Source: Pavona decussata | Lineage: Eukaryota | Length of the DNA stretch: 64,000 nucleotides | Direction: 5' to 3' | Assembly: GCA_977016875.1 (NCBI GenBank) | Contig: CDRNST010000436.1 | Span: 6,138,001-6,202,000 of the forward strand | Shown here: in pieces, positions 4,954-50,765 of the stretch | Layout of the letters: every line of letters starts with the position of its first letter | Position numbering within the stretch: the stretch's first letter is position 1 | Program-made: the position numbers and the translations under genes | Notes under the pieces: model-generated | Database searches by the model: none | Seen by the model: the letters and a program-made list of their open reading frames with translations, nothing else | What the model was told of the DNA's origin: nothing

Positions 4954-7822
4954 TTACTGGGGATTCGGACCAGGGGTGGTTGATTCAGTGGTGTGCGCTG
5001 CCACAGGGCAGATGAGGAAGACGCCAAAATAGCTGGTGTCCCTGTGCATATAGTAGGACTTTGTGAACGGAATCCGCACGGATATTTTGTCACCTTTTCT
5101 GAGCAAGAACACAGCTCCTTGGTAATTTGTGTTGTATTTCTTCGTCTCGTTAACCACACTGCTGATACTGCGCATGACCGGGTCCTCATTGATGTACGTG
5201 TAGTGTCCCATGAAAAGCGTGTCCCCTGCGTAATAGAACAGTTGGCTGTATACGAAGTAGTAACCCGTTGTACCAATCACCAGGAAACTGTTGCTTACGA
5301 ACTTGATACTTCCGGTTATGTGGCCAAGCCTCCAGTTGGTGATGCGGTGAACTGTGGGAGAAAGAAACAGGTCAAAACCTATTAACGTTTCCATTAAATT
5401 TCACTTGAGGAACATTGAAAAGTGAATAACACCACAGGAAAGTACTTCGATTCGCGAATCGATTGGCTCTGAAGCAGGGCTAACGCTCATTCGAATCTCT
5501 TTACGGTGGCTTTTGTTTACAGTATGTCATTATATCGTTTACATGTCGCAAGTGTGTCAGGAAGATGTTTCTTTTTTCTCAATTGGAAGCAAGAAAAAAT
5601 GACAAAGGAATCAACAAAGCCGACAATCTTGAACACTGCTTCTAAGCTTAACTGAATTTTTACATGTGGCATCTCCTGTCAGAGGACATTGTTCACGAGA
5701 GGCATGCAGTCACCAGAGGTTCCACTTTATGGGGCCAAGGTGAGGCCAGACCAAACGATCACGTGGTTTATATGCGATGACACAATGAAGTTCTCCCTTA
5801 TTATTTGCACGGATTTCATACCAGGGACCCTCTCCATTTAGCAAAATTCGGCGGTTAAACTGATTGAATTGCAAATGGCGGGCGCGGATCAAACGGAAAT
5901 TTTCCGGAACAAATGGAATAACTTTGAAAGTACTTCACTTTTCCTGTTCCAGCCGGTTGGAACAGAAATTACCGTTCCATTTGCGGAAAATCTCCATATC
6001 TACTTTGTTATCCTCTTGCGTCTACCTTTGAGATTCCAAGTTTAAAACGAATGGATAAAGCCTTGCCATTCGACAGTTAGAGTTTACCGAATTTCCAACC
6101 GAAAACTTTGGCTAAATGGAAAGGGCTTCAGAGGTCATTGCTTTGCACGTGGTTCATTGTCTACGTTTAGAAAATTGCATTAACTCACAGCCTTGGTCGT
6201 TGTTAAAAGAAATCTAAAAGAGGCCTCAAAAAAGTCGAAAACTTGTCGAACAAAACTGCTTTGTTATTTAAGTTCTTAAGGCCAAAAAAATTGAACGTCA
6301 TAAAATAACATAAAAAATAAACCAAGAAAAACAACACTAACATTTTGTTCTACCTGTGGGAATGATGTGTTCGCCAACCCCAAAAATATGAGCCGAATCT
6401 GTGAACTGAAATGCAATAAAAGAATATTGACCAGGTATTAGACATCAATAGTCCCCTATCACATAGTACACTGGCTGAAGTCTAGTTTCAGTCTTGGAAA
6501 AATAAACGGCAAAGATAATATTACTTACGCCAATCATAGTGCCTGGTATACCTGTGAAAAGAACAAATTAGAAGTTTACAGCGGTTTTCAAAAGAGTGTA
6601 GTTTCTACTCGAAGATATAAGCTTTCAACTACTCTCCAATTGGAGTGAAAATAAAGTTTCAAGCAATCAATCTAACTTAAAAATGACAACAAACGCTGAC
6701 AAGGCAATGAATCCATCGGAATTTGAACCAAAAACAAGTAAAGGACATCAACCGCGGTAAACAAGAGTGTGAGCAAGTTACGATTGGTTTTAGTTTTACT
6801 GGTTATTGACTGGGGAAGTGGCGCAAGATCTTTTTCCCTCTTTTCAGCAATCACAGAATGAAGCAATACCTATTGAAAGTCAAACTCGAAATATTTCACA
6901 CTATGGCTCTCTTCGCTTATACTAGAGCAAAGACTTCAAAAAGAAAAAAAGTAGCACTTATCCTTGCCGGTTACAATGGTTTTGATTTTTCAACTCAAAT
7001 TGTTTCCCTTAATTTATTGAACTCATGCGTCAGAATTCGCTTTCCTGTGCATAATGGTTAATGTTTGGTGATAGATGATCTAGACGTTTAAATAAGACTG
7101 ATGTTTGTTTTGTTTCAGATGCACTACCTTGGGGTCCACGCCTTCCTTGCTCACCTGAAAGAGAGGCAGCGGAAGTCTTAGTAACAGGTAAGTTTCATAA
7201 AGCCAGGAAAATAAGTTTCAGTGATCACGTAAAAATCCCTCCCCCACCCATCCCTTCCTCTTTCAGTCTCCACACGCCTAACTATAAAAAAGACTATTAG
7301 TGATTCACCGACACGGCACAAAAACGTATTATCTTTGAGCCCTCAAAGTAAAAGTGGACCTTGACGACATAAAGCTATTCTCTCCACTACCTAGTTATTT
7401 CTTTTGGTTTCAAAAAAAAAAGGACTTACTGCATTATATTTTGGGTGCGTATTTTATGTATGATTTACGTTACACCATCACGACAATAGAAGCGGATTGT
7501 TATACCCTTTTCGCCCCTGTCTCCTTTCTCTCCATCTTTTCCATTTTTTCCTGCATCTCCTCTGTCACCTTTAGCACCTGAGACGAGAGACGATAAAGTC
7601 AAACTGATAATAAGGAATGTTCGGTTTATCAACAGAATTGACAACCAAAGATAAATTGGCCACTGTAAAGAGATACGAGTGCTGACGTTTCAAACGTTAG
7701 CCTTTCGTCGATGGATTCCCTCTCACGAAACGTCAGCACTCGAATCTCTTTACGGCGGCCAATTTACCTTTAGTTATCAACTCTGTTGATAAACCGGCTA
7801 AAATTTATTTCTACTCTCCAAA

Positions 7823-7853
<31 letters not shown>

Positions 7854-50100: not shown

Positions 50101-50765
50101 CTAACGCGAACCACACAAATCAGACCGACCTTTGAGCTACTAAGAGGAATAAATAGCGATCTTGGTTAGCCTGTGGCACACCCTTAAGGACAATCAACAA
50201 GGAAGCACAATTTGATATTAGTTCGTTACGCGATATCGACTATGGTCTAAAAACTCATCATGATATGAATCTTGAAATCTCCCAGTTGTCTGGACTACTG
50301 GTAATTTAAACAGAACAGATTTTCTGACCGCAAGTTAATAGATCTGTTTGGAAGACACAACACAAACAACGATAAACAATAGGAGACGCATTGAAGGGTT
50401 ACATTTCATGCTAATTTGCATTATTCCAGCTACATACAGACACGCCATCTAAAATTGAAACATCAGATTGCGTAGGTAGTTTTTACCGAGTTTTTACTAA
50501 CCTGTTGCGCTTCCTGAAGTTTTAATTCTTTGGTTTTCCTTGGTTTAAAGTCACCCGAGGGCAAAACTGTCGTCCTAGCTGCAACTCTACTATCCGCCAA
50601 AGAATCGACGCGGCTTCGTAAATCTCGAACGTGCTGTTTTAGCAGACTGTAATCTCGCATCAAATAAACTAAGAAAACACTTGATGACACGCAATACACA
50701 ACTAACAACACGATGGCCGAAGCCAAAATGAAACGCAAGAGGCCTTGCTTCTCGTTTTGAGCCAT
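43459..50765 (-). CDS. Collagen-containing TNF-superfamily ligand (EDA-like), cluster gene 5, about 319 aa, 7 exons
   Basis: Exons, total 960 nt: 50502-50765 (TM), 48207-48327 (RLRR, CIVC, start of collagen), 46873-46908, 46066-46173, 45002-45027 (collagen), 44673-44724 (VAESAHLVG), 43459-43811 (THD: GFYYVYSQMY..YQGGMFHLTRGDVLKV..SYFGVFML). Confidence 0.87.
44114..44160 (+). repeat. (AAT)n microsatellite
   Basis: About 15 AAT units. Confidence 0.95.
45124..45365. mobile_element. Harbinger-like MITE
   Basis: Ends gggaccagttgctcaaagcctgatta and taatcggctttcgaacaacccggcac. Same family as 54494-54688. Confidence 0.65.
45580..45743. repeat. Long palindrome with ~75-bp arms
   Basis: aacaaatagattccatgttgccgt..tggtaagaac and gttcttacca..cggcaacatggaatctatttgtt. 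Confidence 0.8.
46320..46740 (+). repeat. ~107-bp minisatellite, about 4 degenerate units
   Basis: Repeated gaaatcctaaagtgtgacc..aaatgaaagctactgagcagtac..gtttattatgctgtacaaggtggttcta. Confidence 0.85.
47584..48095. mobile_element. DNA transposon relic with 6-bp TSD, nested in an older repeat
   Basis: Ends cagggttttca and tgaaaaaactg. TSD tttggt at 47578-47583 and 48096-48101. It interrupts a repeat whose uninterrupted relatives lie at about 27530-27732 and 36730-36940. Confidence 0.7.

Follow-up and report, generated by a model that had tools for sequence, protein, structure and literature searches.

The vertebrate protein EDA is a type II transmembrane ligand of the tumour necrosis factor (TNF) superfamily that carries a furin site, basic residues before a G-X-Y collagen stretch and a C-terminal TNF-homology domain (THD), and the likeness of invertebrate superfamily genes to EDA has been noted in a review of the evolution of this superfamily. 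In Hydra, the ligand HyTNF is built as transmembrane segment, collagen and TNF domain, "as in human EDA"; a collagen domain is also reported in two of the five Acropora and two of the four Nematostella TNF homologues, and EDAR-like TNF receptors are reported in cnidarians (bioRxiv 10.1101/2019.12.13.875351). In its accessible text, that study, which deals with a single Hydra ligand, makes no mention of a gene cluster, of exon structure, or of THDs in tandem or as alternative exons. From predicted proteins, invertebrate genes that encode several THDs are also known (bioRxiv 10.1101/2024.07.27.603686). Here, we describe a locus of the stony coral Pavona decussata, located in a stretch of 64,000 nucleotides (nt) (contig CDRNST010000436.1, positions 6,138,001 to 6,202,000 of the forward strand; hereafter the window), which very probably represents a cluster, conserved among stony corals, of five genes for TNF-superfamily ligands with an EDA-type architecture.

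The coral genes have the arrangement described above for vertebrate EDA, and the order transmembrane segment, collagen, TNF domain is common to them and the collagen-bearing Hydra, Acropora and Nematostella ligands. They differ from vertebrate EDA in forming a five-gene cluster, in having collagen runs of 19-33 triplets (EDA has an interrupted 19) and a cysteine pair before the collagen, in one gene that encodes two THDs, and in another, gene C, that switches whole THD exons where EDA switches two residues. Like the multi-THD invertebrate genes and the engineered single-chain TNF ligands and duokines, gene B places more than one THD in a polypeptide; unlike the invertebrate genes, it has exactly two divergent THDs behind a collagen stalk, with junctions seen in transcripts. 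Orthologues of C, D, B, E and A are present among RefSeq and GenBank coral models (Montipora capricornis XP_068732458-61, Stylophora "ectodysplasin-A-like isoform X1" and PFX33963/PFX33966, Porites lutea XP_073256512/515). These are 53-68% identical, contain Pfam Collagen and TNF when full-length and lie on the same contigs as each other, but they are named inconsistently, and several are fused or truncated. A collagenous, EDA-like TNF ligand in cnidarians is an already known kind of protein, with orthologues in public annotation. What is new is the full map of the five genes, with one uniform exon plan and coral-wide orthology, together with the transcript evidence for a tandem-THD, collagen-stalked ligand and a conserved whole-domain alternative ending.

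Exon plan and family assignment of the cluster

Five co-oriented genes, A to E, occupy positions 4954-50765 of the window, all on the minus strand; the window is gap-free and has about 40% G+C. In the six-frame list of open reading frames (ORFs), seven TNF-like C-terminal ORFs and five hydrophobic N-terminal ORFs alternate over this interval, and each of the seven THD exons is an intact ORF. Aligned with one another, the seven heads are 34-82% identical and have 24 invariant columns. All seven strong THD matches of the 602-Mb assembly fall in the window, so that the cluster is complete. The exon plan was obtained by direct reading of the sequence and by enumeration of AG/GT-bounded open segments. 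Joined models were used for frame checks, for local comparison with fetched proteins and for the tree, and databases were queried with single exons.

One plan is followed by all five genes. Exon 1 ends in phase 0 and contains a signal-anchor segment of 19 hydrophobic residues (mean Kyte-Doolittle hydropathy 2.3-2.7) that starts at residue 13-18 in each model; a type II topology with an N-terminal signal anchor and the THD at the C-terminus is predicted throughout. Exon 2, of 55-121 nt and phase 0 to 1, carries an R-x-[KR]-R motif (RIRR in A and B, RSKR in C, RDKR in D, RLRR in E) and then two cysteines. The cysteine pair stands between the cleavage motif and the collagen in every model, in gene D as one cysteine in each of two separate 18-nt exons. 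The collagen exons are all in phase 1 to 1, with lengths that are multiples of 9 nt, and G-X-Y runs occur on the minus strand only, each between the transmembrane exon and the THD exon of its gene; the uninterrupted runs comprise 19 (A), 22 (B), 33 (C), 31 (D) and 22 (E) triplets. The collagen exons are followed by a short exon of 23-35 nt (phase 1 to 0), by a strand-A exon of exactly 52 nt (phase 0 to 1) and by a terminal THD exon that is entered in phase 1 and runs to the stop codon. The six strand-A exons, two of which belong to gene B, share the motif ES[IA]HL, with the variant DSAHI in gene A. The order transmembrane segment, furin motif, cysteine pair, collagen and THD is the same in all five models, and each joined model is a single open frame, of 319 (A), 437 (B), 352 or 353 (C), 352 (D) and 319 (E) amino acids (aa).

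An earlier note on this DNA, made from its letters, had described five co-oriented genes with these same exon modules, collagen of about 18 to about 34 triplets and up to seven distinct heads. Its description is borne out almost to the base, outer coordinates included, the modules recur in all five genes, its collagen estimate agrees with the uninterrupted runs measured here, and the seven heads stand as intact exons that all match Pfam TNF, with receptor binding predicted.

All seven terminal exons match Pfam TNF (PF00229) above its cut-off, at 24.9-57 bits against 23, and relatives reach up to 92 bits. A PROSITE-type TNF signature pattern matched D and E only and is given no weight. Searches of solved structures, with single heads as well as with a seven-head profile, gave TNF ligands only among the matches listed, and EDA came first. 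With the profile, the nearest solved heads are EDA-A2 (E 1.8e-15), EDA-A1 (2e-14), TRAIL (2.2e-13), FasL (5e-10), BAFF (3e-9), APRIL (8e-9) and Eiger (4e-8); an engineered three-domain chain that heads each table is not comparable and was set aside.

Tandem domains of gene B and alternative endings of gene C

Transcript evidence was sought for the region 16050-22049, in contigs from four public runs belonging to four different studies. The features of gene B are as follows.

16056..22098, minus strand: gene B, 437 aa with two THDs; joined frame open, 1314 nt
22098-21907, minus strand: transmembrane exon
21778-21724, minus strand: exon 2, with RIRR and CxC
20811-20731 and 20243-20154, minus strand: collagen exons (81 and 90 nt)
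19784-19759, minus strand: short exon
19560-19509, minus strand: strand-A exon 1, 52 nt, joined on both sides in contigs
18512-18132, minus strand: THD1 exon, Pfam TNF 1.7e-09; joint 17346/18132 in three runs
17346-17318, minus strand: linker exon, 29 nt, phase 1 to 0, joined on both sides in three runs
17098-17047, minus strand: strand-A exon 2, 52 nt, joined on both sides in contigs
16411-16056, minus strand: THD2 terminal exon, Pfam TNF 2.5e-15; joint 16411/17047 in four runs

Nine CT..AC joints, GT-AG when read along the minus strand, fall precisely on the predicted junctions, each in three or four of the runs: 21907/21778, 21724/20811, 20731/20243, 20154/19784 and 19759/19560, followed by 19509/18512, 18132/17346, 17318/17098 and 17047/16411. 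They establish that collagen exons are joined to the transmembrane and THD exons in transcripts, a joining on which the earlier note had made its reading depend, and which is seen here in the one gene tested. Most gene B introns are at zero depth in two of the runs. A retrocopy as the source of the joined contigs was rejected, since the genome has no second strong THD copy and a processed DNA copy therefore cannot explain them.

The THD1 exon has an internal phase-1 donor after 18132, which lies upstream of an in-frame stop at 18106 and bypasses it, and the path continues from THD1 through the 29-nt linker and the second strand A to THD2 in one mRNA. Gene B thus demonstrably encodes two THDs in tandem in one chain. 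The two domains are 55% identical, and the Stylophora orthologue P0187 likewise has two THDs. Low-depth unspliced contigs cover the 18132/17346 intron; since they span other gene B introns too, they are no argument for a separate short form of the gene.

In all four runs, contig depth rises from 0-30 nearby to about 125-1000 in two stretches within gene B introns, 16650-16849 and 17850-18049, and many loose contig ends lie at 17898-17930. These high-depth stretches look like interspersed repeats transcribed from many loci.

Gene C has a single set of upstream exons and two terminal exons, and its frame is kept with either ending.

23846..32757, minus strand: gene C, 352 or 353 aa
32757-32473, minus strand: transmembrane exon
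32326-32260, minus strand: exon 2, with RSKR and CxC
30121-30104 (18 nt) or 30121-30095 (27 nt), minus strand: first collagen exon
29696-29589 and 26920-26786, minus strand: further collagen exons (108 and 135 nt)
26097-26063, minus strand: short exon
25971-25920, minus strand: strand-A exon, 52 nt, common to both THD endings
25226-24868, minus strand: THD exon C1
24207-23846, minus strand: THD exon C2, alternative terminal exon, Pfam TNF 4.2e-14

The acceptors of C1 and C2 both take phase 1 and both frames are open, an AATAAA stands at 24794-24789, past the C1 stop, and enumeration of AG/GT-bounded open segments found no strand-A exon between C1 and C2. In the Montipora capricornis orthologue, RefSeq isoforms X1 and X3 are identical up to residue 286, the end of the strand-A segment, and continue with a C2-like and a C1-like head, respectively. 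This supports mutually exclusive terminal THD exons as a probable conserved feature of gene C. The first collagen exon of this gene could end at either of two donors, after 30104 or 9 nt further on, after 30095; the choice would add or omit one basic G-K-R triplet with the frame unchanged, and the three triplets that Montipora has at this place speak for the longer form.

The THD1 exon of gene B and the C1 exon are 93.5% identical in DNA over 339 nt, and the likeness extends 65 nt into the upstream intron at 83% identity (18152-18556 against 24881-25270, minus strand). They differ at 17 non-synonymous and 6 synonymous sites (ratio of the two rates, dN/dS, about 0.67) and are sisters within this genome in the THD tree, with support of 100/83, though genes B and C are old paralogues. 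This pattern suggests that the two exons may have undergone gene conversion or exchange.

Coral orthologues and the remaining genes

Among 1.84 billion representatives, a profile search picked out 743 relatives with E <=0.001. The full-length proteins among the best matches have an N-terminal hydrophobic segment, RxxR, a collagen run and a C-terminal THD. The closest ones, 55-76% identical, come from Montipora, Porites, Acropora and Stylophora, in line with the probable cnidarian source proposed in the earlier note, which is a stony coral, and full-length orthologues with Pfam Collagen and TNF are found in these four genera and in Pocillopora, Orbicella, Oculina and Desmophyllum. An octocoral is also among the nearer relatives. 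Further out, there are vertebrate EDA, "ectodysplasin-A-like" collagen-bearing proteins of Saccoglossus, Ptychodera and Acanthaster, and collagen-bearing proteins without a name from Glandiceps, Branchiostoma and the sponge Oscarella. In a word search with the Montipora protein P0001, collagen-only proteins and MARCO dominate below the first 25 or so matches.

In a maximum-likelihood tree of THDs, head E groups with Stylophora (support 98/100), C2 with Orbicella, Porites and Montipora isoform X1 (100/99), B-THD2 with domain 2 of Stylophora (100/99) and D with Montipora and Acropora (100/100); in several clades, the species of the window sides with Acroporidae. We take Acroporidae to belong to the "complex" stony-coral lineage and Stylophora and Orbicella to the "robust" one. 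The paralogue clades span both and are therefore older than that split, and the expansion is old and coral-wide, not species-specific. The lineage-specific expansion put forward in the earlier note accordingly stands as a coral-wide set of paralogues, but not as one confined to a species, as orthologues occur across Scleractinia; likewise, the THD phylogeny that it had proposed returns separate coral orthologue clades, with vertebrate EDA outside them. Synteny in other corals is read from shared contigs, adjacent accession or locus-tag numbers and fused B+A models only; exact-product look-ups of P0187, P0152, P0179 and P0003 gave no record.

The names of the public orthologues are inconsistent and range from MARCO-like and collagen alpha-1(XVII)-like to C1q and TNF-related protein 9/9B and ectodysplasin-A-like. 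The records concerned include P0003/P0158 (Stylophora PFX33966, PFX33963), P0001/P0152 (Montipora), P0159, P0175 and P0188. Three models of 591-650 aa (598, 650 and 591 aa) are apparent fusions of two adjoining genes: P0159 and P0175 have the order collagen-THD-collagen-THD. P0188 has two THDs and a single Pfam collagen stretch.

Genes A, D and E have the features listed here.

4954..11427, minus strand: gene A, predicted 319 aa; frame open through all exons, GT-AG sites
11427-11170, minus strand: gene A transmembrane exon
10895-10820, minus strand: gene A exon 2, with RIRR and CxC
9244-9218, 8566-8540, 7577-7506 and 7154-7128, minus strand: gene A collagen exons (27, 27, 72 and 27 nt)
6551-6529, minus strand: gene A short exon
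6405-6354, minus strand: gene A strand-A exon, 52 nt
5351-4954, minus strand: gene A THD exon
36164..40638, minus strand: gene D, predicted 352 aa; direct sequence reading and frame check
40638-40354, minus strand: gene D transmembrane exon
40212-40152, minus strand: gene D exon 2, with RDKR
39211-39194 and 39069-39052, minus strand: gene D 18-nt exons, one cysteine each
38740-38633 and 37739-37605, minus strand: gene D collagen exons (108 and 135 nt; 18, 18, 108 and 135 nt when the two cysteine exons are included)
37289-37264, minus strand: gene D short exon
37025-36974, minus strand: gene D strand-A exon, 52 nt
36519-36164, minus strand: gene D THD exon
43459..50765, minus strand: gene E, predicted 319 aa; frame-checked
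50765-50502, minus strand: gene E transmembrane exon
48327-48207, minus strand: gene E exon 2, with RLRR, Cx2C and the first collagen triplets
46908-46873 and 46173-46066, minus strand: gene E collagen exons (36 and 108 nt; acceptor 46173 picked from sequence)
45027-45002, minus strand: gene E short exon
44724-44673, minus strand: gene E strand-A exon, 52 nt
43811-43459, minus strand: gene E THD exon

The junctions of A, C, D and E are predictions, supported in that the splice sites are canonical, the frames run through without a break and the models are collinear from end to end with proteins of other corals, at 68-76% (A), 56-68% (C), 51-55% (D) and about 61% (E) identity over the full length. 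Gene A matches the transcript-derived 319-aa protein P0196 at 76% identity, almost without gaps, and Porites lutea XP_073256515 at 68%; gene D shares 55% of its residues, along the whole protein, with Montipora capricornis XP_068732460 ("ectodysplasin-A-like"), and gene E about 61% with Stylophora PFX33963 (318 aa).

The flanking and intronic ORFs of the window match no Pfam family above the cut-off, and the THD exon itself is the only long direct repeat in the window. Two ORF fragments, 51082-51543 on the plus strand, which has no Pfam match, and 18650-18990 on the minus strand, in a gene B intron, share the motif GW.TL.QRR..., suggestive of a retroelement tail. Weaker THD matches number 46 in the genome as a whole. 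About 26 further THD-like exon matches, with E-values of 1e-5 to 2e-12 and mostly with an internal stop, are gathered within 0.7 Mb of another contig (G000:C60:1877514-2566473); this stretch has the appearance of a second TNF-ligand expansion, larger than the collagenous cluster and unrelated to it.

Weighing of the readings and significance of the cluster

The reading of the locus as a conserved cluster of EDA-type ligands is preferred because all seven heads match Pfam TNF, EDA leads the structure matches, and exon phases and lengths are uniform with open frames throughout. It is likewise drawn from the gene B junctions, the coral orthologues, the Montipora isoforms, the Stylophora tandem THD and the separate tree clades of E, C2, B-THD2 and D, and from the collagen-bearing TNFs published for Hydra, Acropora and Nematostella. 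Several points weigh against it. The RNA label of the four runs is a guess, their contigs carry neither expression level nor strand, and direct transcript support is restricted to gene B. The database queries were terminal exons without strand A, and with such queries EDA is only marginally ahead of TRAIL as the nearest solved head. In the THD tree, vertebrate EDA forms a long branch outside the coral clade, so that orthology to EDA is no more than putative. Finally, shedding, collagen-driven oligomerisation and the choice of receptor are predicted, the first two solely on the basis of sequence motifs.

That the genes encode secreted, collagen-headed proteins of the C1q/CTRP type is hardly credible. 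Two heads do give sub-threshold matches to Pfam C1q (PF00386; E 0.0036 and 0.015), and Stylophora records bear the name "C1q and TNF-related protein 9", but the other five heads have no C1q match and none of the seven reaches the C1q cut-off (best 18 and 16 bits against 23.7), whereas that for TNF is always reached. No C1q chain appears among the 60 matches listed, out of 89, in the profile search of solved structures, and all 60 are TNF ligands; moreover, the N-terminus is a signal anchor with a long stalk and no short cleaved signal peptide. On these grounds, the assignment of the heads to the TNF superfamily rather than to C1q/CTRP, as made in the earlier note, is sound. We also regard it as improbable that parts of the array are relics, with C2 left over from a lost gene or one or more of A, C, D and E being silent pseudogenes. 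All seven THD exons are open and share their invariant columns, every model has a full open frame, and C2 has an orthologue clade of its own (Orbicella, Porites and Montipora) and serves as an isoform ending in Montipora RefSeq, even if C2 has no strand-A exon of its own and the transcript test was confined to gene B.

A more serious alternative, which we still consider unlikely, is that cnidarians acquired the collagen and THD layout on their own, when phase-1 collagen exons were shuffled into a TNF ligand gene; the likeness to vertebrate EDA would then be convergent, and the genes would be coral members of the TNF superfamily with no EDA ancestry. The collagen exons, being in phase 1 to 1, are freely shufflable, EDA is barely ahead of TRAIL, and no short branch of the tree joins EDA to the coral clade. 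However, the collagen-bearing proteins singled out within the best 150 relatives are vertebrate EDA and, besides it, "ectodysplasin-A-like" or unnamed proteins from a sea star, from hemichordates and amphioxus, and from the sponge Oscarella; a single ancient origin is the simpler reading.

Under the reading of an EDA-type cluster, each predicted protein has, in this order, a short cytoplasmic N-terminus, a signal-anchor transmembrane helix, a heptad-like stalk, an R-x-[KR]-R site, the cysteine pair, collagen starting with basic triplets and the THD. By the precedent of EDA and general knowledge of the superfamily, it would be inserted as a type II protein. Three chains would trimerise via stalk, collagen helix and THD, and the conserved cysteine pair may staple the trimer covalently. 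Cleavage by a furin-like protease would then set free soluble trimers with a collagen tail, this collagen, together with the basic triplets at its start, could cluster trimers or hold them on proteoglycans or matrix, as for EDA, and the THDs would signal via receptors of the TNFR family, probably EDAR-like ones. In the case of gene B, three chains would carry six heads, arranged as two homotrimers or as mixed trimers.

Seven different heads are provided by five genes, as gene B has two THDs in series and gene C a choice of two terminal exons. A tentative extension is that the locus is a conserved combinatorial ligand generator, in which gene B, like a duokine, would join two receptor types, the THD swap of gene C would alter specificity, exchange between B-THD1 and C1 would keep the repertoire in step, and both devices would predate the main split of corals. 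If this were true, the gene B stalk would show two different THD trimers or mixed THD1/THD2 trimers.

For one coral, the entire set of EDA-like TNF ligands is mapped to the base, in part with transcript verification; the map offers an exon plan for comparison with EDA genes and shows the paralogues to be old and coral-wide. The public names MARCO-like, collagen XVII-like and CTRP9 for its orthologues are misleading. The cited literature connects coral TNF signalling with apoptosis and heat stress, and the tandem-THD ligand and the whole-domain alternative ending are testable entry points into the diversification of TNF ligands in corals.

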